Program-made: the position numbers and the translations under genes
Origin: Geosiphon pyriformis uo1
Taxonomy: Eukaryota; Fungi; Glomeromycota
Length of the DNA stretch: 64,000 bases
Assembly: GCA_016748015.1 (NCBI GenBank)
Contig: JAAOMT010000714.1
Location: 1-64,000, forward strand
Direction: 5' to 3'
The notes under the pieces: model-generated
The model's input: the letters and a program-made list of their open reading frames with translations, nothing else
Databases searched by the model: none
Told to the model about the DNA's origin: nothing
Part shown: positions 17,200-61,275 of the stretch, in pieces
How the letters are laid out: each line of letters starts with the position of its first letter
Position numbering within the stretch: position 1 is the first letter of the stretch

Positions 17200-18270
<1,071 letters not shown>

Positions 18271-29898: not shown

Positions 29899-31192
29899 CT
29901 AAGAAATAATACTATCTTCAAAATATGGTCCGTAATGCGATTGAAAATTGGTTTTATATAAAAGAGATTTGTTAATACATTCCTAAAAAATTATTTAAAA
30001 GAAAAAACTATTAGATCCAATTAATTGCAAAATAATATTGTATTTCAAAATATTTTACTTTGCTCTCAAGAGTATCTGCCGGATTCTCTGATTCTTGCTC
30101 ACCCTTGCATTCATAAACAGTATACTCGTCACATTCACATTTAGCTGGAATCCAATATTCAGTATCATGATGTCGGAGTTCAATAAAGTCTTCTAGAGGT
30201 AGTCGAGGAACAATATCGTTGTTATATGTAACGCGGTATATTTTGAAAGATTTCACCGAGTTTAAAACTAGCATGTTAATGAACTCTACAAAATCTTTAT
30301 TTCCTATACGAGGCTGACCAAGTGTAATCACCCTGATAAATTTTTTAGCATTTGTATTTTCTTGTTTCTTTGGAGGATGTGTCTTATTCCGCCTATCATC
30401 TTCGACTTTACTTTCATAAGCTAATTTGCTGTAAGTATTAACTGCGTGCAAAACAGCCAAAACTAAATGTGAAAGAGAAAATTTGGATAGGTCTATTAGG
30501 TCTTTGATAACTAAAAGTTTGTTAAAAAGATTTGAAAATTTACCGCCTCCTGTACCGTGACCGTAGAAATTAAGACTTGAGATTTTAGGGGAATTAAAAT
30601 ATTTCAAAATTTGGCTTGCCATACTTTCTTTCGTATCTGAATACATCTTATAAAGTTCCTTATCAATGCCAGATTTTGAAAACTCCTTTGGATATGAAAA
30701 CCTTATTTTTCTATTTAGCCACGTGCTTTGATCCCATTTAGGGCCTTTGAAAACAAAATTAAAATTTTCTTCATCTTTCGTTACAATTAACGCTATTTTA
30801 TTTTCAGCTGAAACCAAGGGTTCGTCTTTCGTTACAATTATCGCTACGTTATTTCCAGCTGAAGTCGAGGGATTTCTTATGTTATTTTCAGCTGCAATCG
30901 AGTGGCCCACGTTTATAAATCCAACCGCTTCTGAAATCATCGCCACAACTATATTTGGCACTTTCGTCTTACTACCAGGTTTTCTTTCACGGCTATGCAA
31001 TTGAATTGCTTCACGAAAAAACGGATTTTCATCTGAAAGTTGAAAATTTAAATTAACAAGAGTCTTTGTATAATTTTGATAAGTTAAGATTAGTTGGCTT
31101 TTTATCTCTTTTCTTTTAATCAAATAATTTAATAAATATATTAAGAAAAAAATTAAAAAGATAAATAAAATGTATTTTTTCATAAGCTTCAT
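29899..31192 (-). CDS. Lipase class 3 (alpha/beta hydrolase)-like protein with N-terminal signal/anchor, ~378 aa; exons 31192..30544, 30462..30059, 29982..29899
   Basis: FVFKG, FYGHGTGG(V)LAVL, ITLGQPRIGNKDF, RVTYNNDIVPRLP, HHDTEYWI; the last exon gives ECIN..SHYGPYF; two GT-AG introns. Confidence 0.88.
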
Positions 31193-35293: not shown

Positions 35294-37558
35294 CTAAACT
35301 TTATAAAAGTTTGATGTTTGATTGGCAATACCTTGATTGATCATTTTCATTTGTTATCAATAAGATTATGAAAATCAGTTAGGCTCAAATTTTTTTTATA
35401 AAATAGATTTTTTCTTTCTTTCTTATATCTAAAAACCCACCAAAAAGTACCTTTGTTGATAAGAAGCTTTTTAATCATTTAGGACAATAAATCCAAATCT
35501 TTTTTGCTCAATTACAAGACTATTGTTGGTCCTAGTATTGCTGTTATAAAGAAGTTTATTAAGAATTCTGGCCTTGGCAATAATAGCAAACAAGTTTTCT
35601 TTAGGAAAAAAAGAAGAGGTAGTGCTCTAAAAGACAGTGTTAAGAACAAGATAATTTCTACAAAAACTTTGAGTAATTACTCTTAGAACTCTAAAACTGG
35701 TAATATTATTGAATCTAATAGTATTGATATAAAAAAAGAGTGTTTGGTAAAAAAAACTAGTGTTGACTATAGTGAAAGCAATACTTATAATAGAAAAAAG
35801 TCTAATTGAACACCAAAAATCTATGAATTAAGACCAAGAAATTATTGGAGATGTCTTTAGAAAAAATTAACTTCTTGAGTAATAAAGATAATGATGTTCT
35901 GTTAGATGTTCTGCCAGCTCTTCTCTTTCCTTTCAAAAATTTGATCAAATTTTCTGCTAGGAAGTCATTTGCTTTAAATATTAGTTTAAGTAATATTGTT
36001 GAAAAATTTTCTTAAGACAAGTTTTTAATAATCAGAAAATTATTTTCAAAAATCAATGATTTTGGAAGGGTATCTATCTTCTCAAAATTTGCTAAGATTA
36101 TTAAAGTTATATTTTCTTCCAAATTTAGCTTAGTGCAGATAACTAAATTGGCAAAAGCTAAAAACATTATTGTAAATACTAATCTTAAAAAATCAATAGT
36201 GTATTTGAATCAGGCTGTGATAGTAAAAAAATCTCAATTAAGACATTGGCTGAGACTATACATGCTGTATTATTTGAATTTGGAGAGATTAAGTTAATCA
36301 AAATACAGCTGATAAAGCTGTAACAGAAAGTTGTGATTGAATTTGGTTACTCAGATTATACTAATTTAGTTTCAATATTGTGGTCTGTCTTAATTAAAAA
36401 GAATACAGTATGTATAGCCAAAACTAATATTAACAAAGAATTTTGGAATGCAAAGAACAAAAATAGAGCACTGTTTTATATATTGTTAATAGAAACAAAT
36501 ATTCACAATATTTGGGATTTTATTGGTTTTATAAGTAGGAAAACATGTATTATAGATTACTTTTTAGTCATATATATTTGAGCTAAGTATATAATAATTT
36601 GTTTTAATTCTGCTAAATTATTGGAGACTGTTATAGTAACTACATTAATACTAAAAAGTGCCAATTTGTATTAGTTCTATCTGGATTTGGCTAAATATAT
36701 AAAGTATAAAAATTTAAGTCATATATTATTAAGTTGTACTATAAATGAAAAAATGTTTTTTGGTGACTTAACTTATAGAAGCTTATCAAAGACAAATAAA
36801 AACAGATTGATAACTATTTATGCCAATTGTTTATCTTGTTTTCTTTAATAGTATTTCTTGAACTAAATTAGTGAATTCTTTTTTCTCCTCTTTTTGTACA
36901 AAGTAGTTCTGTAAATTTTGGCTCCTTTTTAAAGATAAAGCTTATACTGCTCATGTCTAATGAATTGAATATTAAGTTTGCTGCTCTTGAGCACAGTTTT
37001 ACTAGTCTTATAAGACAAGTTAGTAAGGTGGCTAAGAAGTTAGATACACTTGAACCAATAGTTTCTTAGTCTAGTTCTGAATATTAATTATTAATGATCT
37101 TTTTATTACAGAATCAAGGAGCAAATATAGTAATAAGTAAGAGTTTAGATGTGATTATTAGTGATGAAACTGTTGTAAGAATGGTATTTTTGAATAATTT
37201 TTAGATTGGAAAACAGTTTAAGAAGTCTTTCAAATACAGTTCTATGCTTTTTGACCAAAGTAAACAATAAGAATTTGGGCTTAAATTTTTATTTATCTCA
37301 ATAACTAATCTTATTTGGAAAATTACTACATGTAATATTTAAAATATTAATATTTCTGTTAAGCAGAAAAATGTTTTTTATTGGTATATAAATAATAAAT
37401 GCTTAGTTTTAATTGTTATAAAAACAAAGTTAAGATTTAATTGCAGGTCTTGAATAATAAACAAATTTAATAAGATTTGGATCTTTACTTCTGAACTGGA
37501 AAAAAACTTTTCAAGTATTAGTATGGTGGTAATTTTAAATGTCTTTTTAGCTCGTCAT

Positions 37559-38361
37559 TGTTACCGGAGGTTTTTGGTCTCTTTTCTTAAATGTTGTTAA
37601 TGTCTGTTTGTTGTAAATTCACGTTTTCTAGAAGTAGTTGAACCTCCAATAACTGAATTTATTTTCAAATTATCTTCTATAATTTGAACTGCTGGGCTTA
37701 TGAGTGGAATGGCCAATTCCGTGCCAGTTGCTTTATGTAGTTATGTTGTAGTAAACGTCAACTCTTTCCCAGGAATTGCTCGTCTGGAAGCTCACTAAAA
37801 ATGTGTAGTTACTTTGCTGTGAAAGTCAACTCTTCTACAGGAATCTCGTCTGTAGGCTACCCTAATGATTGTAATAAAAAAATAAAAGAAAAATAAAAGA
37901 AATGTAAAAGAAATAGAATTTTGTCAAGAGAAACGTTTTCTATCCAGGCCTGGAGTCACTAACAGCTTATTGAAATTGGTAGCTAATCAATTTCAAAACG
38001 TTAGTTGTGNNNNNNNNNNNNNNNNNNNNTCTTTGAACTTGCACTTTTCTCTTTGCTACAATTTGGGTGAACTAAAGATACATTTTGGCAAATTTACAAG
38101 TTATTTCACTGAACTATTGATTATTTCGGCGAATTTTCATTAATTTCGGCGAATTTTGACTATATTAAATGGTTCAGGGTATTGTGTAATTTGATCATCT
38201 TAATTTCTAGAGTACAAATCGGATTATTGATTGAGTAATAATATTTGATAATTTGGCTAATTTAATAAGTGATAATCGAAATGATAATAATATGCTAATT
38301 AATAATAGGAATTATGAAGATAATTTCGTGCTAATTAATAGCTAAAATTCTACTAGTAACA
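37559..38361 (-). repeat. 3' LTR (20-N assembly gap at 38010-38029 stands for ~186 bp)
   Basis: Colinear without indels with 46310-47278. Confidence 0.95.
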
Positions 38362-38842
38362 TAATCTCCTCCTTAAGACTGAGCTCTGTCATAATCCAAG
38401 CACTATCTGTGATGTCAAGATAATAGTCCAGAATAATTGAAGTGATTTGGTCTGAAAATTGTTGAAATTTCAGTTCTGTGAGTTTGCCAATGTATTGAAC
38501 TTTCATTGGTTGCAGTATTAAATTTTGTAGGACCTTTTCGCAAGTGTTGAACAAATTATAGAGTCTAAAAGCTGCTCTAAGTTTGTAGCGAGTGTTTGTT
38601 GGTCCAGCTGCTGCCTTAAATTCATTGTGAATTTGTTTTTGTACAGTCTCAGAAGTGATGTTGGTTGCTTCAAGTTCCAGTTTTCGTTCATAAAGTGTTT
38701 TTCCCATGTGAAAATATCTATATATAGGGGTATATTCATTGTTCTGTTCATTGAGGAATAGTAAAAGTTTTTGTTGCAATGTGGCATTTGGTGGAATGTC
38801 AATAGGGGCAATTAAAAAGTTTTCTTTTAGTGCTTGCTTCAA
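38342..38842 (-). CDS. Extra 3' ORF (ORF3) of the Gypsy element, function unknown
   Basis: 166 or more open codons between integrase and 3' LTR (open upstream to ~38945); reads through the PPT into the LTR; no in-frame ATG start identified at the 5' end. Confidence 0.6.
   Translation of the reverse strand: MKQALKENFLIAPIDIPPNATLQQKLLLFLNEQNNEYTPIYRYFHMGKTLYERKLELEATNITSETVQKQIHNEFKAAAGPTNTRYKLRAAFRLYNLFNTCEKVLQNLILQPMKVQYIGKLTELKFQQFSDQITSIILDYYLDITDSAWIMTELSLKEEIMLLVEF
38365..38374 (-). other. Polypurine tract
   Basis: AAGGAGGAGA, 3 nt before the 3' LTR. Confidence 0.8.
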
Positions 38843-39339
38843 AAGTTCTGGTAATCTATTTCCAGAGTGACTTCTTGTTTTTCTTCTATAAGAGTGATAG
38901 TTCTGAGAATTATTTACTATTGGGCTGTGATTTCTTTCTGAATGTATTTAATTTGACTTCCATTAATCGTTATGGACAAGTCAGGAAGTGTTTTCAAAGC
39001 TAACATTAATTTTTGAGATATTTGTTGAATATTTTGGGGAATAATCATGATAAAATTGACTAATTAATGAAAAGGGAGAATAAAGAAATTATTTTTGGAT
39101 ATGGGGTTTTATTTGTTTTTGGGTTTGGGTGTTTTTGTAATTATATACTATTTTTGTCTTTGTGTGTTATTAAAAGATTATTGTAAAATTATGTTGAATT
39201 AAGTGTTCAAGTTTGGTTGTTGTTCTATTATAATTATTGGTTCTAAATTTCGGGGAATATCTTCAGGATTAATTAAAGGGGAATGTGTACCAATTTGTGG
39301 AATTAATAGTTCAGGATTGTTTTTAGAATGATAGTGTTT

Positions 39340-40400
39340 CAATCTGTCTCCATGTGCAACTTTTGCTAGTATTTTGTCATCAAGTCTTAACTTGTATGAT
39401 CCATTGCCTAGAATATCGTGAATATAAAATGGTCCATTCTATTTGTTTTCAAATTTTCCACTCCATTGTTTTTCAGCCTTAGTTCTGTGTAAGAGAACTT
39501 TATTTCCAACTTTAAATTCGTTGGTAATGGGTGGTAATTTGTTGTCATGTCTTTCTTTTTGTTGAGCTTGGAAATGTTCAATGTGAGTTGCTGCTATCTT
39601 TCTTTTTTCTTCTAGTGTACTAAAAAGAGTGTAGACTCTTTTTTGGAGTGTTTCTTAAAAGTTTTTTTCATTGATTGGTTGCATTAGGTATGTTTCCACT
39701 GTGAAATTAATTGGTAGTATTGCTGTCTTTTCATAAGTAAGATCAAATGATGTGTGTTTCATAGTATCTTGTTTTAGTGTTCTGTATGCTAGTAACACTG
39801 ATGGAATAAAAATATTCCATTTCTGCTCAAAATCTGTTGAGACTTTGGCTAAAGATTCACACAATGTTCTGTTGAAATGTTCTACAAGTCCATTTGTTTG
39901 AGGGTAATAAGGTGATGATAGAGGTTTTTTGATATTAAACCATTCAGAAATTTTTTGTATCAAGTTGTTTACAAAATGTGTTCCTTGATCAGATAAAAGT
40001 TCAATTAAGCATCCATGTCTACAAATAATGTCTTCATAAATGAAATTTGCTACTGATTTTGCATCTGCTCTTTGGATGGCTCTAGCTTCAGGCCATTTGG
40101 TAAGATAATCTACTGTTACTGCAATATAGTGATTTCTTTGGGTTGTAATAGGTAATAGTCCAACTAAATTAATTTCAACTCTGTCAAAAGGTTGTCCAAC
40201 TTTGATTGGATTTAAAGGTTCTGTGAGGCGAGTTCCTTCTCTTCTTTGACAACTATCACAAGATTCCACATATTGTTGAATGTCTTTTTGCATATAAGAC
40301 CAAAAATAATGTTCAAGAGTTCTTTGAATTGTTCCATCTCTTCCCAAGTGTGCTGAAAAAAGATCTGTGTGCATGTTGTATAGAATTGTTTCTTTTTCAT
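39340..40400 (-). pseudogene. pol: Gypsy integrase (H2C2 zinc finger, rve core, GPY/F-like tail)
   Basis: MH..AHLG..CDSCQ; RVEINLVG, LSDQG, NGLVEHFN; GPFYIHDILGNGSYKL; stop codons present. Confidence 0.92.
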
Positions 40401-40699
40401 TTTCCTGTACTAATCTGAGTGATTGGTTTAGATTTTTACAATTTTTGTAATAGATTTTGTTGTGGTGTATAAAACATTGTTTGGATTGGTGTTATAATTG
40501 ATGTTTTTCACTTGGAAACCAATTTTCTGGCATAGTGAGAGTTTCCAAATAGTTTTTAATGTTGTTGTAATTTTTTGGATCTATTGTTGTTGATTTTGTT
40601 GTTTGTTTTGCTGTTAAATTTGTTGGTGTTTTGTTGGTTTTAATATTGTCTCATTCTTGAGAGGCTGTCAATATTAGTGTGTAGTTTTCCTGGTTTGTG

Positions 40700-41950
40700 G
40701 TATACAATATATTTGTAGTCTGCTAAGAAGTCATTTCATCAAGACTGTTTGGCACTTTGTTCAGTTTTCTTTTTATTAAGCCATTTGAGACCAATATTGT
40801 CAGTTATGATATTAAATTCTTTTCTATTTTTCAGATATTGTTGAAAATGTTTAAAAGCCCAAATAACTGCAGCAGCTTCCAATTCAGTTGAGTTATATTT
40901 GAGTTCTGTTGGCTTGAGTGTTCTACTGGCATAGGCAATAACTTGTTCCTGGCTATTTTCATCTAATTGTGATAGGATGGTACCAAATGCTATATGTGAA
41001 GTATTAGTGGCTAGTTGGAACCATTTGTTGAAGTCTGAGTAAGCAAGAACTGGGACTGTTGTCAATCTTGTTTTGAGAGTTTCAAAAGCTTTTTGTTGTT
41101 CTTTCACCCATTTGTATGACACATTTTTGTTGGTGAGATAATTGAGTGGTTTTGCAATTTCTGAGAATTCTTTAATGAATTTCCGATAGTAGGAGGCTAA
41201 TCCTACAAATTTTTATAGCTCTGTGGTATTTTTGGGAGTTTGGAAGTTTTTGACAGCACTAATTGTTCTAGGGTTTGGTTTGATTCTATTTTTGCTCACA
41301 ATGTGTCCAAGAAAGATTAAGCTTGTTTTTTCAAAGTGATATTTCTTAATGTTTAACTTTAATCTTGTTTTCTATAATTGTTGAAAAACTTCTCACAAGT
41401 AAATGAGATGAGCTTCAAAGCTTGGTGAGTATACATTAGTGTTATCAAGATAAACAACTACTGATTGCCACAAGAATTCTTCATATACAACATCCATGAG
41501 TCACTGGAATGTTGCTAGTGCATTGCAGAGTCCAAAAGGCATAACATTGAACTCATAGTTTTCTCTTTGGGTAGTAAATGCTGTTTTGGGTCGGTCTTTT
41601 GGATCTATTTCGACTTGCCAATATCCATTTTTCAAGTCTAAAGTTGAGAAAAACTTGGCTTTTCCTAGAGCATCTAGTATGTCATCAATTCTTAGAAGAA
41701 GATAAGCATCTCCAATTATTACACTGTTCAATTGGTGATAGTTAACACAAAATCTGATTTTTCTATTTTTCTTTTTGACAAAGACTACTAGTGAGACCCA
41801 AGGACTTCTTGATGGTTGAATCAATCCATTATTGAGTATTTTCTGAACTTCTTCTCTGATGAATTGGTGGCTGGCAGGTGGTACTATGTAAGCTTGTTGA
41901 CATTTTGGTAGAGCATCTTCTGTATGAATCTAATGTTGAACAATATCTGT
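40700..41950 (-). pseudogene. pol: Gypsy reverse transcriptase and RNase H
   Basis: PSRSPWVS, RFCVNY, LDLKNGYWQ, MPFGLCNA, VYLDN (from YLDD); RNase H LATNTS..VIAYASRTL..ELEAAAVIWA. Confidence 0.93.
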
Positions 41951-42484
41951 TTTTCCCAAGTTATTGTTGTTTTTTGTGAATATATCTGCAAATTCAGCTA
42001 TCAATTGTTTCAATTGTCTTTGTTGTTGAAGTTCTAAGGGACCCATGTTGATTTGAGAGAGTTTTTCTTCTAAAAGGTAATAGTTTTCAGTGGTGAAAAT
42101 GATATTTGGATTTGGGAATAGAGTGTGCCTTATAATTTCGATGAAATTAGAGACAATTTGAGAGTTTTCATCTTGAAAAATATTGCTGTATATGATTCCA
42201 ATTTCTAATTTGTTTAATAAGACAATAGGGTAATTATTGGGATTGTAAAATGTAACTCAAAATTTTTTCATTTCTTTGGAAATATAAACGTTTGGAATTG
42301 AGATTTCATGCTTCAAACAAATTTGTTTATTGGATTCAAAGATTTGTTGGGTAATAGTGGGTTTTGAGCAAGTGTAAATTTCGTGATGTTCTCCAAAAAG
42401 TAAAATGGTAATTGGTTGAGGAAGTTAAAGAATCTGGTGAAATTCATTTTGTATATTAAGAGCTATGTTTACTGGAACTGTAAA

Positions 42485-42890
42485 TCGTCTAGTTGAACCA
42501 AAACCTTGCATTCCTCTTTCACTTTTTCCCAATTGTTCTCTGTTGTTAACTGATTGTAGACCCGAAATATTGATTAAGAGTAGGTAAATTGCTTGAGCAA
42601 TTTTTTCAGCATGTTTAATCTTAAATGGTTTGTCTGTTTCATTCTGCAACATGATAGTAATGTCTCCAGTGTATCTTGCATCTATAACTCCTTCTCTAAT
42701 ATTGATTTCTTTGCTTGCCAATGATGATCTGGAGGCAATTTGAACCATTGCTCCTGGTGGTATTTCAAGAGCAATTTTGAAATTGATTTTTGTCAAGGAC
42801 TTTGGTTGAAGAACCAAAGTATCTTTTCCTGGGTATTTTAGATCATATCCAGCATCAATTTCGTGTGCTTTTTCTGGTCTGATTCCTTGG
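42485..42890 (-). pseudogene. Trimeric dUTPase domain inside pol, between protease and RT
   Basis: All five motifs are recognisable: AGYDL, SRSSLA, GVIDARYTG, KIAQ, RGMQGFGST. Confidence 0.93.
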
Positions 42891-43859
42891 CCATGGTTGT
42901 TAAAATATTTAAGTTGTAGAGGTGATTGCTTTTCAAGAAGATAGATGGGGGTGGTTGGTAGTTTTTCTACTAGTTCAGATACTCCAAATTCGATTTCATT
43001 TTTATCATTCTCATCTGGCAGAGGAATGCTAAGAGCATAACATTCTAAACACCATTGGTCATCACAAGACATAACACATTCTTTACACAATTGAATATTT
43101 ATTTGCTCTAATCATTGAATTTGAGCTTCTTTGGTTGGGTATGTATGACTTGCAATTTGGTAATAGGTTTCTATTTTCATCTTCATAATCAAATCCAGCT
43201 AATTCTATGGTATACTCAATGTATTCAGCTTCTTTCATTTGGCAGACATCTTCTTGGGTGGCTCCATTGATCAATGCTATTGTTAAGTCAAAAATCATTT
43301 CAGTATTATGAGGGTAGTGGTAAAGTTTACTGAGAGCACTGTTGTATGCTGTATCAAATAGTGTTCCTCTTCTGACTTTTTCTGAAATTGATAGAGCATA
43401 TTGACAGGTCTGATTACATACTCCTCCTTTCATTGCAACATCAATTCAGTTGCATTCTTCTGATAACATATTTCTACATATAAGGCAAGGAGTGTTGTCC
43501 TATTTTCCACTCCTTTTAGAATATCCAAATCGTTCTTTATGGCATGCTTTGCAAAAGTAGCAGGTACAAGTTTTATATTCCTCTTCTGGAAAAATACATG
43601 CTCTCATTGATGAAAGTTTCTTGTTGTAATCTTTGCATTTAAGTGGAATATAGGGTGGTTGTTTCTGTGGTTCTGGAGTAAAATATCTAACTTTCTTCCA
43701 TCCTCTTGATTCTTCAAAAATCTTTTGTTTTGTTTTCTCAGCCCAATTAGATGTTGATCCAAGAGCCATGTAGGTTTCAGTAAGTAGCATTTTTTTTTTC
43801 TCTTCAAATTCAAATACTGGGGCTTTTTCTGATTGTTTGTTAAAAGTACCATAAGTAGC

Positions 43860-44230
43860 AAGTACTATGGTGTATTGTCCTTGGTATGAGATTTTTAGTT
43901 CTTGAGTTTCCCAATCTAAGTTTGCATTGGCCTTAAGAAGCCAATTATTTCTGACCAGAGCTTAGTATTAGGGTGCATCCATGACTAAAACTTTGACTGG
44001 AATGATAATTCCATCAATGGTAAATGGGAAATTGTCAATTTCTCCTACTGGTGTCTTTTTCATATCATCTGCTATAACAATTACAGTTTGAGCTGGTCTG
44101 TCAACAGTTCTTTGAAGCTGTTACATTAATTGGTAGGTAATAATACTTCTGGCTGATCTACTGTTTAGAATTAATCGGATGGGTTTTCCTTTTACTGTAG
44201 CTTCAGTGTACATGGCAGTGATAGTTTTTT
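43860..44230 (-). pseudogene. pol: Retropepsin-type aspartic protease
   Basis: MYTEATVKGKPIRLILNSRSARSII (degenerate LILDSGSAGS). Confidence 0.85.
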
Positions 44231-44779
44231 GTTCATTAGCTGCTGCATTATTAAGCAAGAATGGTGATTCATTTGCTTCAAATTCGAATGGAAATATATC
44301 TGAAAGATTGGCATTTTGGGCAATTTGGGCTGGTGGAATAGTATTGTTGGAAGGGTTTAATCTTGGTGCTACAACTTTACCTTCAGAAAGTGCAGATTGT
44401 TGAAAATCCGATCTTTCAGGCATTATAAGATAACTGGGTTGAATGTGATAGTGATTGGGTTTTTGCTGACCAGAATTTCGGGGAACCAACTGGTTATTTG
44501 TATTGATTCTATTGTTGTTATTTTGAAATTGATTTTGAGATGTAAATGAGTTATGTTAAACCAATCTTCTGACTAGTACTTGATATTGTTAAATGGGTGG
44601 TGTCTGATATTGCTGAATTGGCAAAGGTTGCTGATATTGTTGCTGTATTGGTTGTAAAGCTGGTTAATAGTAATTGTTTTGATTTTGTGGTCTTGGTAAA
44701 TAATAAATTGGTAGTGAAAGTTGGTAATAAGATTGTTGTGGTGAAGAATAACGTTGATTACTCTTATTTTGTTGGTCTC

Positions 44780-46264
44780 TTTGCAATTTCTTGCAATCTC
44801 GTTTCCAGTGTCCTGGAATTTCACAATAATGACAATTTTGAAGTTGGTTGTTGAATGATAATCCAAAATTGTTTTGGTTGCATTATTGTGGAGGTGGATA
44901 TCTTTGTGGTGATTGTTGCTGTTGTTGTTGGTTTGTGAAGTAGCTTTCAATCTTCTTTGTGAGTTGGTTTATCTTTTTTTCAGCTGCTGAACTGGTTTCT
45001 CTAATAGCTAGATTGACAAGTTTGGTGTGATTTGCTTCTTCCATAGCCATTTCATAGTTCTTTGTATGTCTAATGACTGTTGCTAAGTTTTCTGGAGCAT
45101 GTGGGCAAACTTTCTTGATTAATTTGTTCTTTAATCCTGCAATAAACTGATCCAAAATCTGGGCATCAGAATAGTAATCATTGGTTTCCAATTGTCGAAT
45201 CTGTCGAAGGAGTTTGTTGAATCTTCCAAGATAGATTATAACAGTTTCAGATGTTTCTTGTTTAATATTGTGAAAGTAATTACAGAAAGTAATAGAGATG
45301 TTGTTGTCAATAAATTGTTGTAAGAAAGCATTTTTAAATGCTTGCCAGTTTTCAAATGGTTCTTCTAAATTTTCAAATCATTTTTCTGCTGTTTCTTGGA
45401 AAAAGTAAGAAATTGCTTTGAGCATTCTTGCTGCATTCCAACTATTTGCATCTCCTGCTTTTTGAACTTTGTCAAGCCATTCTTGAGGACTGATATCATT
45501 ATCTTCACCAGTAAATTCTGGAATCTTTGCAATGTAAGCAGTTGCTATTTTTTTTTGTTTCCTGTAGTTTTTTCTTGTTCTGATTCAGTTTCTTCACTTT
45601 TCAGACTCTCTGAATGATTACTTTTGTTTTCTTCTAAGTAATCAATAATATTGGCACTTGTTGATATTGGTTCCTGCTGTTGAGTAGAATTTTTAGATGA
45701 CTGATAATCTTCTAGTCTGGAGAAACAGTTAAGTGGTAAACTTGGTGTTTGTAGTTGAACAAGTGAAATTGGAAATAGTGTAATAGAAAGTAGTAATTTG
45801 ACACTGGTTTCTTGTTCAGGTGTTTGCAAGTGTTTAGCAGTTGTTTTTTGTAGTATTGGAGTGTTTGAAGTGGTTCTTGAGTATTGCTTCAATTTTTGTT
45901 TGCCTTTGTTGCTTGTTTCTGTCTTTGATTCAAAATTAATAGAGTATTGAGACTGTACTGGGTAATTTTCTTTACAATACTCAATAATGTTAAAATTAAG
46001 TTCTTGAAAATAGGTAGCAAGTGTTTTACTGTTCAGGTCTTCTGTTTTCAATTGTGAATAGTGCACTAAATTATTGTAGAAGTTGCTTCTAACTTCTGAA
46101 ATATTGTAGTTTCTAAAAAGATAATTGTTGATGCAGTTTTCATTGTATTGGCATACTGATTTCTTGACAACTTCAATTCTGTCTGAGATGTTGAATCTTT
46201 GCTTGTAGTGGATATAAATTGACTGATAATACTCTAAAGTTGCTGTGTTTGGTGTGGTCGCCAC
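44780..46264 (-). pseudogene. gag: Gag (long N-terminal extension, retrotransposon gag domain, CCHC knuckle)
   Basis: KIPEFTGED..PQEWL; ILDQFIAGL; CHYCEIPGHWKRDC at ~44790-44835. Confidence 0.88.
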
Positions 46265-46291
46265 TTTGAATTTGTTATTGCTGTGTTATTT

Positions 46292-46307
46292 CCATGGGAG
46301 AGCACCA
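46292..46307 (-). other. Primer binding site
   Basis: TGGTGCTCTCCCATGG, 2 nt after the 5' LTR; complementary to a tRNA ending ...GAGAGCACCA (tRNA not identified). Confidence 0.8.
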
Positions 46308-46309
46308 AA

Positions 46310-47278
46310 TGTTACTGGAGGTTTTTGGTCTCTTTTCTTAAATGTTGTTAATGTCTGTTTATTGTAAATTTACGTTTTCTAAAAGTAGTTGAACCTCCAA
46401 TAACTGAATTTATCTTCAAATTATCTCCTATAATTTAAACTGCTGGGCTTATGAGTGGAATGGCCAATTCCGTGCCAGTTGTTTTATGTAGTTATGTTGT
46501 AGTAAATATCAACTCTTTCCCAGGAATTGCTCGTCTGGAAGCTCACTAAAAATGTGTAGTTACTTTGCTGTGAAAGTCAACTCTTCTACAGGAATCTTGT
46601 CTGTAGGCTACCCTAATGATTGTAATAAAAAAATAAAAGAAAAATAAAAGAAATGTAAAAAAAATAGAATTTTGTCAAGAGAAACGTTTTCTATCCAGAC
46701 CTGGAGTCACTAACAGCTTATTGAAATTGGTAGCTAATCAATTTCAAAACGTTAGTTGTGTTGAGGGAATTTCAAGTGTAATAATTTAAGGATTTGGTTT
46801 TCGAATATTTAATTTTGATTTGATTTTGTAAAAAGTGATTTGTTCTAATTAAGATATCTAAAATAAGATACTATAGTAAGATATGGGAAGGATACATTTT
46901 CTTGAAGAGAGAAGCTCTTCTTTTATACAACTTGTTGTAGTACTAGTCTTTGAACTTGCACTTTTCTTTTTGCTACAATTTGGGTAAACTAAAGATACAT
47001 TTTGGCAAATTTACAAGTTATTTCACTGAACTATTGATTATTTCGGCGAATTTTCATTAATTTCGGCGAATTTTGACTATGTTAAATGGTTCAGGGTATT
47101 GTGTAATTTGATCATCTTAATTTCTAGAGTACAAATCGGATTATTGATTGAGTAATAATATTTGATAATTTGGCTAATTTAATAAGTAATAATCGAAATG
47201 ATAATAATATGCTAATTAATAATAGGAATTATGAAGATAATTTTGTACTAATTAATAGCTAAAATTCTATTGGTAACA
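46310..47278 (-). repeat. 5' LTR, 969 bp
   Basis: TG...CA ends; 21 substitutions versus the 3' LTR over ~783 comparable bp. Confidence 0.96.
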
Positions 47279-50200
47279 CCATATGTCTAAAGTCAAAGAA
47301 ATTTTAGGCCATTTGATCTCATTTTGACTACTTTTTAAGAATAAGCTTTTAGTAATGATTTTAAACTTATATACATATGCAAATACAATAGTATAAGCTG
47401 AGCAAGCAACAAAAGTAAATGTGCTTATTGCTAAAACTGTAAATTTTAGTTTTTTTGTGATTATAAGTGAAAATTTTAATAAAAATAGTTTCAAAAAGAT
47501 TTAAGTTATAAATTTTGTTTGAGTTTGGGTCTAGTTAATGTCCTCAAAGATTAGTGTTTACTTAAACTGCTCACATAGTACAATTTAAGAGAAGCTGCAA
47601 AAGTTATTAATTATTTATTTGTAAGTAAGAATTTTTTGTTATTATTGACCAAACAAATGGTTAAGGATGTTTTTAAGTTTTTTAATACAGATTACAGAAC
47701 TGTCTAGTTCTCTGTTAGACTGGATGGCCTTCTGGATGTACAATTAAGTATTGTTCAGAAACAGGCTAATAAGAATTGTTAGAGATTCAAAATTAAGGAT
47801 ACAAATAATTTTAAGTAGACTAGTTTTGGAATTTATTTATTATTTAGGCTTTTTTTGACAAAAAATAAGTTCAATAATGCCAATATTAATGGTAATTTAA
47901 GCACAATATAGAAAATTTTACAAGATATAGTATTAGATTTAGCAAATGAAATGTTTTCTAAATTTAATACAATAAAGAAAGATGCTTTTCTAATAAACAG
48001 TTATCACGATTTTACAAGTTAAAGTTATTAGTTGTCAAGCTTATCAAAACCATGAGTGTTGGAGACAAAACAAAATTTGATTATCTTTTACAAATTTGAC
48101 TGATTACTGATTATAATAAGGCTTTGAAAATCCAGAGTTTAATTCAAGATAATATAAAATCAACTAACATTTTTTGTTGCTTGTCAAAGATTAAGAAAAG
48201 ATATTATAAGTCTAAGTTGTATGAATCAAGAGTTGTTAAAGCTGTGGATATTAATGCTGTTATTAAAAAAAGAATGAAAAATTTTTGTTTAGATAAAGAC
48301 TGTATAATCAAAAATATACTAAAAAAACTCTTTTGCAAAGTAGTTGTAAATTACTTGGTAATTAATAAGAAACTGATTTTAAAATCTGATAAAATCAGAG
48401 CCAAGATGAATGTAAAAATAAAAAACTGAACCAGAAAATAGAGGATTTTGGAATCTGTTTCTGGAATATAAACAAATTAATATATTCTTTTAAAGTACAT
48501 AGATAATTATATTTTTTCAAACATAATAGTTGTTATTAATTATAATAAAATGTTTTAGATGGTAAAAAAAAGTTGCTGAATGAAAAAGCTGTTGACTTAA
48601 GTGACATATTTAATAAGTTGTAAAAACATTATAGGAATAATGTTTTAAAGTATTTATTAGATCTGTTAAATTCTCATTTATCTCTGAGTAAGATTTCTAT
48701 ATTGTGGAGATGTGTTTGAGTCTTAATAATATTTAAGCTATATGATTAGAAAAAGGTATTAATAAATATTCAACTTATTACTTTAATCAAAATAGCAAAA
48801 AAAATTTTGTCCAAAATTTTTTCTGATAGAATTTTTATAATTTACAGCAAATTTAATGTGTTTCATAAAGACAATTTTTCAGTACTAAAAAACACTTTAA
48901 TACAGACTTCAATTTTGGCCATAGACTCTGTAATTGAAAATGCTTTGAAAAAAAAAAAATTATGGCTGGTTTTATAAAATATATATAAAACTTATAATTT
49001 AATTGATTGGTAACATTTATGTAACAGCTTGATTAAAATAAAGATGTGTAAATATTTAATCAAATTTTTTGAGAATATTTATAATGAGATAATTAATTAG
49101 ATTATAAAAAATATTGAACTTTTAAATAAATATGTAATTCATGATAAACTCGATCAAAAAAAAGTTTTTTTTCATTATTATAGAGAATTTTTTATGATTC
49201 TTTGCTTTGTAAGATTAAAAAACATAAACAATTGTATAGTTACAAGATAAATTCAAAATTTTTACAAAAACTAATAGAACTGATTTTACAGATAGCAAAA
49301 CTTTTTTTCTTGCTATGAATGTTTTTGTTAATAATACTATCTGGATTAAAAATTGCATGACAGTAATTTAACACATTCTAAATATTGTAAGTGAGTTTTT
49401 TTCTATTAATAATATTTTAATCAATACTAACAAAACAATTGTTATTCTTATCAATTAAAAAGTTAAAAAAACTGTGCTGTTTATTAATAACTCAAAAATT
49501 TTAATAGCCAAAAAAGGTGAGTTTTATAGATATCTAGAAATCTCTTTGTTAACTGACAACTTGTTTAAACCAAACTTAACCAAAGCTTATCTTAATATTA
49601 AGTTTTTTTCAAATGTAATTTTAAGGAAGGCTATTATTAAAAAACAATTTTATATCTATTATTTGCTGTTCTGTAGTTTATAATTGGCTATAAAATGCAG
49701 TTTAATTGGATTTTAAAAAATATATATAAAAAGTGAGACAAGATATTAAGGAAAAGACTAAAGCTTAAAGCTAATTTCCTTAAAGATTTTTTTAATAAAG
49801 TATTATATTATCTTATATTATATAATTTTAAAATATTTAAGCATATGCTGCTTAAGAATCTATTGGCTAATCTAATCTATTTTGCTAATACAAATAAAAT
49901 CTTTGGCAGTTTATTCAAACACAAAACTATAGTTTTATAGATTATTAGCTGAATGTTCTAGTACTCTTTTCGAATTTTAATTAAGTTGCTGATTAATTCT
50001 ATAAATTGTTTTCTGATGAGTATAACATGTGTTTTTGTTTTTTGTAATTTGTTTTTAGGTGACAATTTGTTTAATGTTTTTTAAACCAGAGATAATATTG
50101 TAGTTTTAAATATGTTGAGCTTGGATGGTTATATAAATGTAATAAGATTTCTTAGGAAATTTAACATAATTTTTGTAAATCAATTTCTAGATTAGCATAA

Positions 50201-53200: not shown

Positions 53201-53789
53201 AAGAAAGCGTATTGGAAAATTTGAAAATAAATGAGATACTTTAAAATCAAAGCCTTTAAAGTATCTTATAAGAGAATGAGAAATCAAAATAGTCGGTATC
53301 TTTTAAAGAGAATGAGAAATCAAAATGGTCGGTATTTTATGAAGGGAATGAAGAATCAAAAATGTCCGTTATCAAGTAACTGTAAATTTACAAAAAGAAC
53401 ATTACCAATGGGACACTCCAAAGAAGTATCATTAAAATGAAGATAAGTAATGAAAAATGCTAAAGTTTGAAGAAGGTAGAAAAATTGAATAAATGCAATG
53501 AATTATGCGACGAATTATTTGGATCCTCAATTTTATGCATTTTTTGGGTAGAAAGTCCAAAAAACATATAGAGAACTAAGTAAAGAGAAGAAATACAAAA
53601 AAAGGCAAAAAGAATGTAAGTTGGGGATAATTAAAAAGAGATCAGAAAGTATAAAAATGCAAATGTTCGTGTAAGGTGATTTTGATTGTCTAAATTATTA
53701 ATATATCTAATTTAGGCAAGTGAAAATAAATTATTTGGCTCAGTTATTTAGTTAGTTTAATAAGTCAAATGTAAAAAGCTTATAAATAA

Positions 53790-54092
53790 CTAGTTTGGAT
53801 TGGTAGGTCTGTAGGAATAGACAAAGGTTGGTTCAACGAATTCTTCTTTTACTGTAAAATCAATATTTTGTGGAGAGAGAATTGTTGATATATTTTCGCC
53901 AGGATTATTATTTACTGGTGGTGGGTTTTGAGCTGGGTTGTTGATAGGGGCTGGTTGCTGATTATTGGGCACCATTAGTTGGTTTGGTAATTGATTAACG
54001 AACTCACGATTAATTCGACATAAATCAGGGGACCTATCTATATGGGAAATTGTTGATGGAGTATACATTGCTATAAGATTATTTCGATTCAT
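53790..54092 (-). CDS. 100-aa Asn/Pro/Gln-rich hypothetical micro-protein (family copy C)
   Basis: Intact ATG-to-stop ORF; paralogue of 5971-6273. Confidence 0.55.
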   Translation of the reverse strand: MNRNNLIAMYTPSTISHIDRSPDLCRINREFVNQLPNQLMVPNNQQPAPINNPAQNPPPVNNNPGENISTILSPQNIDFTVKEEFVEPTFVYSYRPTNPN

Positions 54093-54258
54093 GTTTAAGA
54101 AAGTTGAGAAAATATTAAAGATTAAAATTTCAAAAGATCATATTTCTGTTCATAACCGACCAATTGAAAATTGTTAGCGAAAACTATAAATAGATGTTCA
54201 AATTAAAATATATATTTCCTTTTATGTAAGATATGTATAAACTATTTTGATTTTGTAT

Positions 54259-57699: not shown

Positions 57700-59090
57700 C
57701 ATAAACATTTGAACTTGATATAATAATAATATAATTATAATGTTGAATTCAAAAGAAAAATATTAAATTTTTTATTTAAAATGCTAAAAAATAAAAAATA
57801 AATATTATAATTATTAATCTATTTGGGTATCAATTAGTATTCTAAGCGTTATACATACTTTAACAGCTAATATTTCAAATCAATGTAGGATTTTAAATTC
57901 TAAATTCAATACCAATCTCAATCTATGACAAAGCTTAAGTAACAGTTTCCGAAACATACCTAAACACACGAACATGTTCAAAGCATATTTAAATAATAAT
58001 AATTCGGGAAACAGACACACAATAACAGAACAGAACAGAACAGAATAGAACGGAACGGAACAGAACATAAACTTCATCATCTATATATGCTTTAGGTGTC
58101 GTATGCGTGTGAGTGGGTCTTGCCAGCAATCTAAGAGTTGGTATGAATGTGTACTAATCCTAAAAAGGAAAGCCTTTCAAGTACGTGAAAAATAAGTGGG
58201 TCTATTGATTGGCTTAAGAGAGTTTTAACCATTTATTAAGAGAGAGAAAGAGAGAAGGTAAAATGAAGAAATGAGGAAAGTGCACTAGAAAGATGAGAAA
58301 TTGAAAATTAGCAAGATACTTTAAAATTAAATTTTTTAAAGTATCTTAAAAGTGAATTATTAACTATAAATTAAAAAAAAATAAGAAGTGCATATATTGT
58401 CTTCTTTGATTATTAAAGTCTCAGATAACGTAAAGAAGGGTTTGGACAATGATCAATCTATCATGAATTTTTGGCAGAAATAGAATGAATGATTCGGACA
58501 TTCCAAAGAAGTATAATTGAAATGAATAAATACAATAAATTATATGACGAATTATTTGGATTCTCAATGTAATGCCTTTTTTTGATAGTCAGTTCGAAAA
58601 ATACATAAAGAACTAAGTAAAGAGGAGAAATACAAAAGAAGCAAAAAAAAAATCAAAGTTGGCGATAATTAAAAAAGGTCAGGAAGTATAAAAATTCAAA
58701 CCTCCGTGTAAAGTGATGGATTGTCAAAGTTATTAATATATGTGAGTTAGGCAAGTAAAATGTAAAAAGGCATATAGATCAATTAGTTTGGATTTGTAGA
58801 TCTGTAGGAATAGACAAAGGTCGGCTCGATGAGTTCTTCTTGAACTGTAAAATTAAATATTCTGCCGATTGAGAATTTTTGATACATTTTCACCAGGATT
58901 ATATTGTACTGGTGGTGGGTTTTGAGTGGAATTAATAGGGGCTGGTTGTTGATTATTGGGGACTATTGGTTGGTTTTGGTAATTGATTAATGACCTTGGG
59001 ATTAATTCCACATAAATTAGGATATCTATCGATATGTGAAGCTGTTAATAAAAATATATATTGCTAGAAGACTATTGTGATTTATTTTTA
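57700..59090 (-). repeat. Dispersed repeat module D
   Basis: 57890-58340 matches 5228-5720 including the (CAGAA)n site; 58500-58780 matches the module B/C flank. Confidence 0.8.
58783..59070 (-). pseudogene. Micro-protein family copy D (frameshifted)
   Basis: NNQPAPIN..QNPPPVQYNPGENVSKIL..TVQEELIEPTFVYSYRSTNPN, with small indels. Confidence 0.75.
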
Positions 59091-60398
59091 AAATATTGGG
59101 ATTATAATGTCAAAAAATCTCGTTTACAAGAAAGATTGAAAAATTACTTAATAATACAAAATTATGACAATGGAAAAATTTATTATCCCTGATCATCTAT
59201 TAATTCCATAAATGGGGTAAGTAAAAATGTTCCTATTTGTAAAATTTTCCAGAAAAACTGTAGCAGATATATATATAACAAAAAACATTCTTGTCAAGTT
59301 TGATTTAGTGATGGTCCTCTCCCAAACAAAATATATACACAGCATCCTATTCGTGGTACATAAGTATGATCAACCCAATTTATTTATCGATTCTAGGTTA
59401 CATATGTCTCTTTTACATATTGCTAATTGAAATAATATTTTTCGTTTTCATAAAAAGTGATAGACACAACAGCTAAGATGATAATGGATTTTAATAATGA
59501 ACTTAATAACGAACTTGAAGAATTAAGAGTAGATGATTCAATTTCGAATGTTCCAAATGTATTCAATACATCAATACTTTCTACATCAACAAAAACGACA
59601 TATAAAAAACACAAATATAATTAAATATTATTATTAAAATGCACAATATTTAAACTATATAATATTAAAAAAATTTGTGAAAATATTTAATAATTTACCA
59701 AAATGTATAAAAAAAAAATTTTTTCCTCTAAAAAATATATTTTAACTTTAATATTTAAATTTTTTAAACATATTTACAAGAAAATTAAAAAAAAATCTAA
59801 AATTCTTTTTGAAATTAATTATATTGTAAATTAATTAAAAGTTAATTAGCTACCAATTTTAAAGAAATTATTTTTGTTATATTGTATTATAGTAAACCAA
59901 AAAAGAAAAATTAATAATCAATAAAAACTAAATAATACAAAAAAATTAAAAAATTGAATATTAATAAACTGTATAATTTTACAAAAAATTTAAATAAATT
60001 TGTTAATAATTAAAATTTTTTATATAAATTTATATTTATTTTAAAGATCTTATTTAACTATTCTATTTCTGTTACTTTTGTTTAATTTACTGTATTATTA
60101 TAATTAAAACATAAGTTTATTAATTATTATATTGAAAACTTTGGTTTTTATATTTTAAATATAATTAATATAATTTTGCTTATGGTTTTTTAATAAATGT
60201 GGTGTTTTTAAAAGATTTTTTAAATTTATTATTATTTTTTTAATATAAATTCTTAAAATAAGAAAATATAATTAATTTCAGTTGATTTTAAATAAAATAT
60301 TGTTTTTTTTTGTTGTTTAAAAGTATTTTTATAATAAATTTCGAAACTATTTTTAAGTTAAAGTTTACTAAATAATATAAACTTTAAGCAATTATTCT

Positions 60399-61275
60399 AT
60401 TCAAATTCGAACAACTGGTAATGACAAAAATCGGTTTACTTGTGTCTTGGCTATAACAGCAGATGGCGGCAAACTCCCTCCTATGATAATTTTCAAAGGT
60501 GTACGAACTCCTCCTAATCTTTCTAAAGACGTTGTCGTATATATGCATGAAAAAGCTTGGATGGATGAAAATTTGATGTGTGAATGGATAGATCAAATTT
60601 GGAACAAACGTCCTGGAATATCAACAGCATCCAAAACTACCTCTTTACTTGTTATGGATTCATTTGAAGGGCACAAAACTGAATCAGTACGCCAAAAATG
60701 CAATGTTAATAATACTCATGTGGCAATGTGAGTTTGAGAAAGGAGAAAATTACCCCGATGGCAGCAAACACACTTTAGAACAAGATATTCCTGACGGTTT
60801 AACATCAATTATTCAACCTTTGGATGTATGTATAAACAAACCATTTAAAGACAGATTGAGAGAAAAATGGCGATTATGGATGAGTCATGGAGATTTTCAA
60901 TTGACTAAAGGTGGAAATTTAAAAAAACCCCAATATAATTTGATTTGCCAGTGGATTTTAGAGTTATGGAAAGATATTCCTTTAGAAATGATTATTAAAT
61001 CATTTAAAAAATGTGGAATTTCTAACGCATTAGATGGAACTGAGGATGATTTATTATATAGTTCTGATACAGAAATTAGTAATCAAATTGATGATTTAAA
61101 TGAAATAGTAAATGAAGATAATATTTCTGCTGAAGAATTAGAATTAGATAAATAAATAAAAATTTATTTTGGTATATATAAAGGGGTTGCTTATTCAACT
61201 TTTCTAAGACTTTTAGACTTAAAAAGGGAGGGTTGCTTATTCACAGGAATTGCTTATTCACGGGAGTTTACGGTA
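60399..61275 (+). mobile_element. 5'-truncated pogo/Tigger-like (Tc1-mariner, DDE_1) DNA transposon with right terminus
   Basis: TGNDKNRFTCVLAITADGGKLPPMIIFKG, KAWMD, LLVMDSFEGH, IPDGLTSIIQPLDVCINKPFK, SFKKCGISN; three TTGCTTATTCA subterminal repeats; ends GAGTTTACGG followed by TA. Confidence 0.9.

Follow-up and report, generated by a model that had tools for sequence, protein, structure and literature searches.

Repeat-induced point mutation (RIP), the RID- and DIM-2-dependent process of Neurospora crassa and other Pezizomycotina, changes integrated repeated DNA by C:G>T:A transitions, on both strands over time, and inactivates transposons through stop codons and lost catalytic residues while spilling slightly into adjacent DNA. 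In its Neurospora form it prefers CpA, which shifts the standard RIP indices, is triggered by duplication as such (any duplicate above roughly 0.4–1 kb and 80% identity, genes included), leaves tracts in which the mutations of one event lie on one strand, and acts in the pre-meiotic dikaryotic stage. Outside the ascomycetes, retroelements of Pucciniomycotina such as Microbotryum undergo RIP-like TpCpG hypermutation, which has a 5′ T preference and is thought to be linked to methylation. RIP-type signatures in basidiomycetes have been reviewed as not attributable to RID or DIM-2 (PMC13297926). In plants and vertebrates, methylated transposons decay by deamination of 5-methylcytosine, with CpG depletion and clock-like single-site events on both strands, whereas APOBEC3 enzymes edit retroviral and retrotransposon cDNA before integration, with a preference for a pyrimidine 5′ of the C, and inactivate retroelements by G>A/C>T changes. 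Published kingdom-wide screens found RIP-like composition signals only in ascomycetes (PMC12543289).

Here, we analyzed a 64,000-nucleotide window of the AT-rich genome of Geosiphon pyriformis uo1 (contig JAAOMT010000714.1, positions 1 to 64,000), a fungus of the Mucoromycota/Glomeromycotina type. We found that LTR retrotransposons decay after insertion almost only by C-to-T changes, in every sequence context and on both strands, whereas the other duplicated DNA that we examined shows ordinary mutation spectra. These results point to a transposon-directed cytosine mutation process in a lineage in which the published screens detected no RIP-like signal. The starting observation, that the two LTRs of one element differ only by transitions that are mostly outside CpG, was confirmed exactly. 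The accompanying interpretation, a RIP-like defense or an all-context 5mC pathway, was supported only in part.

An LTR retrotransposon decayed by transitions

The element is a dead Ty3/gypsy-type LTR retrotransposon on the minus strand. Its 3′ LTR lies at 37559–38361 and its 5′ LTR, of 969 bp, at 46310–47278, with TG..CA ends (TGTTAC...GTAACA). BLAST alignment of the two ends matched 37559–38009 with 46310–46760 (451 bp, 13 mismatches, 0 gaps) and 38030–38361 with 46947–47278 (332 bp, 8 mismatches, 0 gaps). The sequences flanking the assembly gap at 38010–38029 are therefore colinear parts of one LTR, with a start-to-start spacing of 8751 to the left of the gap and 8917 to its right, and the 20 N stand for about 186 bp, equivalent to 46761–46946 in the other LTR. 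The 4-bp target-site duplication reads TCAT on the left (37555–37558) and CCAT on the right (47279–47282). The internal region (38362–46309) is broken into short ORFs by stop codons and has the domain order expected of this class. It contains, all on the minus strand, a 239-aa 5′ ORF at 45548–46264 with no family match, placed at gag by position only; the protease active-site region at 44157–44165, in an ORF piece that Pfam itself did not match; a dUTPase domain at 42428–43090 (PF00692, E 2.2e-22); a reverse transcriptase piece at 41441–41824 (RVT_1, 41504–41824); an RNase H piece at 40742–41122 (RT_RNaseH_2, E 1.3e-32); and an integrase piece at 39658–40374 (Integrase_H2C2 and rve). As originally described, the catalytic motifs are decayed, and each differs from other copies by G>A on the sense strand. 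The protease reads NSR where other copies read DSG, the reverse transcriptase reads YLDN at 41441–41452 (YLDD in 7 of 13 copies), the integrase reads EIN at 40168–40176 where most copies read GID, and the dUTPase reads ARY at 42671–42679 where most copies read AGY.

The two LTRs differ at 21 of 783 sites, and all 21 differences are C/T or G/A, with contexts CpA 8, CpT 6, CpG 5, and CpC 2. The reported survival of CpGs in both LTRs also held, in that TTTCGGCGAATTTT occurs twice in each LTR. The probability of 21 transitions among 21 changes is 1e-5 at the transition share of the in-window controls (0.58) and 0.009 even at a share of 0.8. Seventeen of the A/T alleles lie in the 5′ LTR, as the original prediction had cautioned, but this 17:4 asymmetry shrinks to 11:4 plus 6 unresolved sites after polarization and is not significant. 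The original prediction also raised the possibility that the LTR bordering the gap is a collapsed consensus. Consistent with this concern, the gap does lie inside that LTR, and the low-coordinate third of this copy carries fewer derived alleles than the rest (5.4% against 12.8% of C/G sites). However, short contigs at single-copy depth argue against collapse at three places, namely 37111–37584 (across the flank/LTR junction and including C at 37565), 38362–38437, and 39583–39650. These contigs, which come from the only public sample, probably the source of the assembly and hence not independent, agree with it with no differing letters, although no listed contig bridges the gap. Because thirteen other elements without gaps show the same spectrum, and because an artifact would not produce transitions only, we consider an assembly artifact very unlikely.

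Spectrum across the family

The pattern extends to the family as a whole. Fourteen sister-LTR pairs, including that of the window, gave 652 transitions to 45 transversions (Ti/Tv 14.5 overall and over 20 in the youngest pairs). When polarized against other copies, 448 of 524 changes (85%) were C:G>T:A, compared with 39 A:T>G:C and 37 transversions, which corresponds to 6.0% per C/G site against 0.21% per A/T site, a 28-fold difference. The rate is uniform along the element, at 10–15% of C/G sites per copy, and every copy examined is inactivated. The changes fall site by site, and they have destroyed the catalytic motifs and created stop codons. A related family has been changed in the same way. 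Perfect 4-bp target duplications in three of six elements of the family show that these are true sister LTRs, and the other three duplications differ only by transitions, indicating that the changes reach the adjacent target duplications, much as RIP leaks into flanks. Transition and transversion counts correlate across pairs (Spearman rho 0.55, p 0.04), as expected of gradual accumulation, and there is no significant excess scatter between sister LTRs (chi-square p 0.11).

These data contradict editing of the cDNA during retrotransposition or errors of reverse transcription, and the original argument that APOBEC-type editing is excluded was upheld. Sister LTRs, which are identical at integration, differ by these changes; C>T and G>A occur within the same LTR (8 and 9 in the 5′ LTR) and in nearly equal numbers overall (218 and 230); and the host target duplications are affected too. 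Copies do also differ by shared changes that predate insertion and are mostly C>T/G>A, but we regard this explanation as very improbable.

The context of the changes departs from that of Neurospora RIP. Mutation rates were 5.3% for CpA, 5.8% for CpT, 7.6% for CpC, and 7.8% for CpG, such that there is no CpA or other 3′ preference and 89% of the changes lie outside CpG. The RIP indices are negative (TpA/ApT 0.80–0.82; (CpA+TpG)/(ApC+GpT) 1.36–1.38). The order of C>T and G>A along copies is nearly random once local C/G availability is allowed for, with runs only about 3% below random (combined z −1.96), and thus there are no strand tracts. Instead, there is a 5′ neighbor preference of T>C>A>G (23, 17, 12, and 8% of sites; chi-square 95.5), a threefold range. 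In contrast to the TpCpG pattern of Microbotryum, the 3′ G is not required, as TCG (7.7%) is no hotter than TCA, TCC, or TCT (7.3–9.8%). CpG is nonetheless the fastest context, by 1.3–1.6-fold, and the family is strongly CpG-depleted, with a CpG o/e of 0.19–0.23 and a TpG+CpA o/e of 1.26, against 0.72 and 1.08 in the rest of the window.

Duplicated DNA in the same window and in Rhizophagus

To ask whether this spectrum is simply the genome-wide bias of an AT-rich genome, we compared it with other duplicated DNA. A low-copy dispersed duplicate, here called famX, has copies at 5862–6290 (plus strand), 9380–9975, 53435–54110, and 58480–59100, and gave 104 transitions to 75 transversions, including alignments of 437 bp at 95.7% identity and 368 bp at 87.5%. 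Tandem repeats of 51/102 nt inside a long minus-strand ORF (13860–15808, GC 46%) gave 29 C:G>T:A, 12 A:T>G:C, and 38 transversions. Ti/Tv in these duplicates is thus 1.1–1.4, against 14.5 in the LTR pairs (Fisher p 2e-28), and the excess of C>T over all other changes in the LTRs is about 15-fold relative to the controls. A GC>AT bias does exist, as the window is 14–33% GC in most 2-kb bins. However, the famX spectrum implies an equilibrium GC of 0.30, close to the 0.266 observed in the window outside the element, whereas the LTR spectrum implies 0.036, far below any part of the window. These controls carry ORFs or are tandem and do not include unique non-coding DNA of this genome, so they are not ideal neutral DNA, although selection on coding controls would be expected to raise their Ti/Tv rather than lower it. 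On this evidence, the LTR spectrum is not the background spectrum, and a genome-wide bias is an unlikely explanation.

A similar contrast was seen in Rhizophagus. LTR pairs gave transition:transversion counts of 4:0, 2:0, 8:1, 2:0, and 24:1, and two R. clarus copies gave 428:36, whereas tandem arrays, including non-coding arrays next to hypermutated elements, and tandem gene duplicates had Ti/Tv of 1–2.6. A 1.6-kb tandem gene duplicate in R. irregularis showed an ordinary spectrum. The escape of low-copy duplicates and tandem repeats suggests that the trigger is transposon or chromatin targeting rather than homology alone, and a purely homology-triggered RIP is not supported. However, the lengths are near the Neurospora threshold, and this is not a strong departure from RIP.

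Possible sources of the cytosine changes

Our results are most consistent with a model in which the host marks transposon chromatin with dense 5-methylcytosine in CG and non-CG contexts, using DNMT1 together with DIM-2-type or other DNMT paralogues, and methylated cytosines then deaminate to thymine, either spontaneously or with enzyme help, faster than they are repaired. In this view, the outcome would be a slow decay that inactivates transposons, with the same effect as RIP. We hold this model with only moderate confidence. The spectrum, its timing after integration, its restriction to the transposons compared with other duplicates, and the presence of DNMT genes were demonstrated here, whereas methylation as the intermediate and the way in which transposons are targeted are inferred, in the absence of methylation data for this organism. 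A profile search of the genome identified a DNMT1 with RFD-BAH-BAH-methylase order at 420027–423692 of contig C371 and a BAH plus methylase locus at 1326200–1327926 of contig C702. It also returned methylase-only matches, left unclassified here, at 788280–789372 and 820713–821336 of contig C657, at 684535–685894 of contig C646, and on contigs C666 and C692. The original statement that only CpG-type methylation is described for arbuscular mycorrhizal (AM) fungi is incomplete: LC-MS found 32.5–49.5% of cytosines methylated in R. irregularis, and AM fungi are reported to keep DNMT1, DNMT2, DNMT5, DIM-2, and RID (PMC8298701). Because methylated CG sites account for only 13.8% of genomic cytosines (PMC8647823), there is room for much non-CG methylation, although non-CG methylation of AM fungal transposons has not been mapped in the papers we consulted. 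The CpG depletion and the faster CpG rate are signs of methylation, but other features fit less well. Remaining CpGs mutate only slightly faster than other contexts, which is odd if CG methylation is the densest mark; the 5′ preference is not a known property of DNMT1 or DIM-2 and resembles deaminase preferences; and the bias is stronger than methylated transposons of plants and vertebrates are known to show.

An active, RIP-like enzymatic process is not excluded, but it is the more doubtful reading. Under this model, RID/Masc1-type or DIM-2-type DNMT paralogues would deaminate cytosines of transposon copies, perhaps in a cryptic sexual or pre-meiotic stage, with a relaxed context preference that differs from Neurospora. 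The predominance of C:G>T:A, the inactivation of copies, the spread into the target duplications, and the presence of several methylase loci are compatible with it, copies share 85–92% identity, within the range that RIP recognizes in Neurospora, and the size of the excess is easier to reach with an enzyme. The absence of a CpA preference and of strand tracts, the negative indices, the lack of significant excess scatter between sister LTRs, the apparently gradual accumulation, the unaffected duplicates, and the restriction of RIP-like composition signals to ascomycetes in the published screens argue against it, and the term RIP-like in its strict sense is not supported. The lineage also lies outside the Dikarya, and a sexual stage is not known to be involved. 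It remains possible, although we consider it unlikely, that Glomeromycotina-type fungi have an active genome-defense mutator that is blind to sequence context, is aimed at transposons rather than at any duplicate, and would probably run on their RID/DIM-2-type paralogues. Such a process would have escaped notice because every published screen looks for dinucleotide (CpA) signatures, and if it were tied to a pre-meiotic stage, it would also be a molecular footprint of sex in a lineage long debated as asexual.

Finally, an unrecognized DNA cytosine deaminase, or poor uracil repair in compact chromatin, could act on unmethylated cytosines of heterochromatic transposons and would explain the all-context spectrum, the weak favoring of CpG, and the 5′ T/C preference. 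Profile searches of this genome found no APOBEC_N, OTT_1508, Bd3614, or DYW deaminase match (PF08210, PF14441, PF14439, and PF14432) and only five generic CDA-fold loci, although for PF14441 and PF14432 the control genomes did not respond either, and absence is not proven. UNG and a TDG/MUG-type glycosylase are present, the strand tracts that single-strand deaminases usually leave are absent, and the CpG depletion of the family points to methylation; we therefore consider this explanation unlikely. One feature in its favor is that the element family encodes its own dUTPase, upstream of reverse transcriptase in the polyprotein, as in the dUTPase-encoding Ty3/gypsy elements described in basidiomycetes, a different host lineage. 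By analogy with retroviral dUTPases, this would suggest pressure from uracil in DNA.

A decayed retrotransposon and its two LTRs

The region 37559-47278 is one LTR retrotransposon on the minus strand, with LTRs at 37559-38361 and 46310-47278 that have TGTTAC...GTAACA ends and are flanked by TCAT on the left and CCAT on the right. The reading frame is broken into pieces of at most 239 aa, which we searched separately without reading through any stop codon. Pieces on the minus strand match dUTPase (42428-43090), reverse transcriptase (41504-41824), RNase H (40742-41122) and integrase (39658-40374), and a protease-like motif lies at 44157-44165. This is a Ty3/gypsy-type element that encodes a dUTPase. 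The low-coordinate LTR contains a run of N at 38010-38029, but the sequence on both sides aligns without indels to the other LTR (37559-38009 with 46310-46760, and 38030-38361 with 46947-47278). The two sides are therefore parts of one LTR, and the gap hides about 186 bp rather than 20. Contigs from the only public sample holding this DNA agree with the assembly with no differing letters, although that sample is probably the source and does not provide independent support. Contigs at single-copy depth lie at 37111-37584, crossing the flank/LTR junction, and at 38362-38437 and 39583-39650, whereas no listed contig bridges the gap.

Over 783 comparable bases, the two LTRs differ at 21 positions, all of them transitions, with no indels. 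Our recount of the contexts of the mutated cytosines gives CpA 8, CpT 6, CpG 5 and CpC 2, the same as the counts in the original prediction, and 17 of the A/T alleles lie in the 5′ LTR, as had been claimed. The CpG-bearing 14-mer cited as an example of surviving CpGs occurs twice in each LTR. The decayed motifs YLDN, NSR, EIN and ARY are also present. In an alignment of 14 copies they differ from the commoner YLDD, DSG, GID and AGY by G>A on the sense strand, and other copies carry their own, different G>A and C>T hits in the same codons. The observation was thus confirmed, whereas its interpretation as a RIP-like defence was only partly supported by the analyses that follow. One irregularity of this copy is that its low-coordinate third, next to the gap (37559-39800), has lost 5.4% of its C/G sites relative to the majority of copies, compared with 12.8% for the rest (40759-46250). 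Recombination between lineages, gene conversion or a local assembly problem are possible causes, although the single-copy-depth contigs support three places in the low part.

Cytosine-to-thymine change across the family

The genome (128 Mb, 792 contigs) holds many copies of the LTR, and we collected 13 further elements that have both LTRs. Perfect 4-bp target duplications (CCAT, CCAG, ACAC) in three of six elements checked confirm that the pairs are true sisters. In the other three elements the duplications differ only by transitions. In total, five of the 24 duplicated host positions differ between the two sides, all by transitions, and the process therefore reaches at least 4 bp beyond the element. 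The 14 pairs give 652 transitions and 45 transversions, and the youngest pairs give 21:0, 23:0 and 30:1. An assembly artefact at the gapped LTR is contradicted by these data and is very unlikely. We then polarised each difference by the state of the other copies, using per-column counts rather than a consensus sequence. This yielded 448 C:G>T:A changes, 39 A:T>G:C changes and 37 transversions, with 173 sites left unresolved because the same cytosines are hit in many copies. Per site, 6.0% of C/G positions changed compared with 0.21% of A/T positions, a 28-fold difference. C>T (218) and G>A (230) changes are balanced, so both strands are hit, and editing of cDNA is likewise contradicted and remains only a remote possibility. 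An alternative count restricted to singleton changes among 14 full-length copies proved misleading, because C sites are hit independently in several copies and singletons under-count C>T; it was replaced by per-column counts against the majority state and by the sister-LTR comparisons.

The change depends only weakly on the 3′ neighbour. Polarised rates are 5.3% for CpA, 5.8% for CpT, 7.6% for CpC and 7.8% for CpG. Without polarisation, the shares of sites that differ are 16, 15, 18 and 26%, respectively, and 89% of the transitions lie outside CpG. The 5′ neighbour matters more (T 23%, C 17%, A 12%, G 8%; chi-square 95.5, p 1e-20), and TCG is no hotter than TCA, TCC or TCT. The family as a whole is strongly CpG-depleted, with an observed/expected ratio of 0.19-0.23 compared with 0.72 in the rest of the window, and shows an excess of TpG/CpA. 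The classical RIP indices are negative, with TpA/ApT at 0.8 and (CpA+TpG)/(ApC+GpT) at 1.37, which explains why index- or k-mer-based screens would miss the process.

The mode of accumulation looks like many independent single-site events accumulating with time. Against the majority state, each full-length copy has lost 10-15% of its C/G sites to C>T, evenly along the LTRs and coding region. An apparent clustering of hits by strand (summed z about -4.9) shrank to a combined z of -1.96 once the local supply of C and G was modelled, so that the order of C>T and G>A hits along a copy is almost random, and there are no long single-strand tracts. Transitions and transversions rise together across the 14 pairs (rho 0.55, p 0.04). 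Sister LTRs do not differ in hit number more than chance allows (p 0.11), and after polarisation the 17:4 asymmetry of the window's pair becomes 11:4 plus 6 unresolved sites, which is not significant (p 0.12).

Comparison with other duplicated DNA and with Rhizophagus

Three lines of evidence indicate that this is not simply the background mutation spectrum. First, a low-copy duplicate family in the same window, which we call famX, shows 104 transitions to 75 transversions on three-copy parsimony, and its rate of C:G>T:A per site is only about twice that of A:T>G:C. Its copies lie at 5862-6290, 9380-9975, 53435-54110 and 58480-59100 and are 80-96% identical, and a genome search reported about 30 matching places, mostly fragments. 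One small contig of the genome (C40, 8850-9220) matches the famX query with the same score and identity as the window's copy at 5912-6282 and has further pieces at 7226-9596, suggesting that it may be an allelic or duplicated version of this region. The famX spectrum implies an equilibrium GC of 30%, close to the 26.6% of the window outside the element, whereas the LTR spectrum implies 3.6%, lower than any part of the window. Second, the 102-nt tandem repeats inside the ORF at 13860-15808 show 29 C:G>T:A changes, 12 A:T>G:C changes and 38 transversions. This long minus-strand ORF (644 aa, 13854-15901) is built of 51/102-nt tandem repeats, has no Pfam match and, at 46% GC, lies far above its surroundings. 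Third, the contrast between the LTR pairs and famX has a Fisher p of 2e-28 for Ti/Tv and of 6e-45 for C>T against all other changes.

These controls carry ORFs or are tandem and are therefore not perfect neutral DNA, although selection on coding sequence would be expected to raise Ti/Tv rather than lower it. The control for unique DNA is indirect: as a candidate for a cross-strain or cross-species comparison, the lipase_3 ORF at 30014-31192 was not on record elsewhere and had no homologue at E 1e-20 except itself, and only the source sample holds the DNA. Nonetheless, a genome-wide background bias is contradicted by the available data and seems unlikely. Although only one family was analysed in depth, other repeats in the flanks of its copies, including a related dUTPase-bearing gypsy family, show transition to transversion counts of 5:1 to 24:1, and the process is therefore not confined to one family. 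The window also contains an ORF with a DDE_1 transposase match at 60649-61155 on the plus strand, a pogo/Tc1-like DNA transposon remnant. BTB-domain ORFs and a protein kinase ORF, which belong to gene families that are expanded in AM fungi, lie at 675-2100 and 24060-25456.

The phenomenon appears to be shared among AM fungi, with a stronger CpG component in Rhizophagus. The integrase piece has its best named relatives in Rhizophagus irregularis and R. clarus, at 50-52% identity, and a kinase ORF of the window falls in clusters that are mostly Mucoromycota. This fits a glomeromycete-like fungus that is not Rhizophagus itself. In loci from public Rhizophagus assemblies, LTR pairs give 4:0 and 2:0 in R. 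irregularis and 8:1, 2:0 and 24:1 in R. clarus. Two R. clarus copies of one family differ by 428 transitions and 36 transversions over 7.3 kb. Between them, the share of sites differing is 31% at CpG against 8-15% in the other contexts, and 61% of the transitions are non-CpG. In the same loci, tandem arrays and a 1.6-kb tandem gene duplicate have Ti/Tv of 1-2.6. Tandem Laminin_G_3 gene duplicates and long tandem arrays next to LTR elements (positions 14001-17706 of the R. irregularis locus L049, and 433-3687 and 12400-16336 of the Rhizophagus loci L058 and L056) keep an ordinary Ti/Tv (1-2.6) although they are repeated DNA.

Candidate genes and possible mechanisms

Our results support the view that a cytosine-to-thymine process acts after integration, in all contexts and on both strands, and that it falls on LTR retrotransposons and their immediate edges while sparing other duplicated DNA. 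This much is shown by the sequence comparisons; any mechanism is inferred, and in the absence of methylation data for this organism the role of methylation belongs to the inference. The most economical mechanism, which we consider somewhat more likely than not, is dense methylation of transposon chromatin in CG and non-CG contexts, followed by deamination. By domain co-location, the genome contains a canonical DNMT1 (RFD, two BAH domains, methylase) on contig C371 at 420027-423692 and a BAH plus methylase locus on contig C702, and there are methylase-only matches on contigs C657 (two), C646, C666 and C692. LC-MS found 32.5-49.5% of cytosines methylated in R. irregularis, and AM fungi are said to keep DNMT1, DNMT2, DNMT5, DIM-2 and RID (PMC8298701). 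Nanopore calling, done for CG only, found mCG equal to 13.8% of cytosines (PMC8647823). Taken together, these figures leave room for abundant non-CG methylation.

An active RID/DIM-2-type mutator remains possible, if less probable. It would better explain the size of the excess, but it does not fit the missing tracts and the escape of other duplicates. An unknown deaminase, or poor uracil repair in heterochromatin, would explain the 5′ T/C bias but has no candidate gene and appears unlikely. Searches of this genome for the APOBEC_N, OTT_1508, Bd3614 and DYW families found nothing, and only five generic CDA-fold deaminase loci were detected. We also considered whether the genome lacks uracil-DNA glycosylase. 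The Pfam UDG model found only a TDG/MUG-type gene, but the UNG model found a multi-exon gene on contig C609 at 277695-278345, and this idea was rejected.

Prior work states that RIP signatures were not detected in AM fungi (PMC8647823, citing Venice 2020), and a 2025 kingdom-wide screen found RIP-like composition signals only in ascomycetes (PMC12543289). We found no paper describing transition-only LTR decay in AM fungi, although our search did not cover subscription journals. In contrast to those screens, the direct sister-LTR test used here shows a very strong C>T process restricted to transposons relative to the duplicates examined, which index-based screens cannot see because it has no 3′ dinucleotide preference. 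These results provide a concrete, testable link between the unusually high 5mC content of AM fungi, their retained RID and DIM-2 homologues, and transposon control in genomes full of repeats. If the process proves to be stage-specific, it would also bear on the question of sex in AM fungi. One practical consequence is that LTR and Kimura-distance ages of transposons in these genomes are inflated. In the window's element, all 21 LTR differences belong to this process, and no change of any other kind has accumulated.

Finally, the dUTPase domain lies upstream of RT both in this gypsy-type element (42428-43090, minus strand) and in a related family nested in another copy (8698-9984, minus strand, of the locus L038 from contig C733). 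The presence of an enzyme that keeps uracil out of DNA in elements that die by C>T may or may not be a coincidence. In two places, on contig C733 at 933825-953785 (loci L038 and L039) and on contig C411 at 209966-230665 (loci L042 and L043), the family's LTRs are about 19-20 kb apart with a different dUTPase-bearing gypsy element between them, and these are nested insertions of one family into the other.
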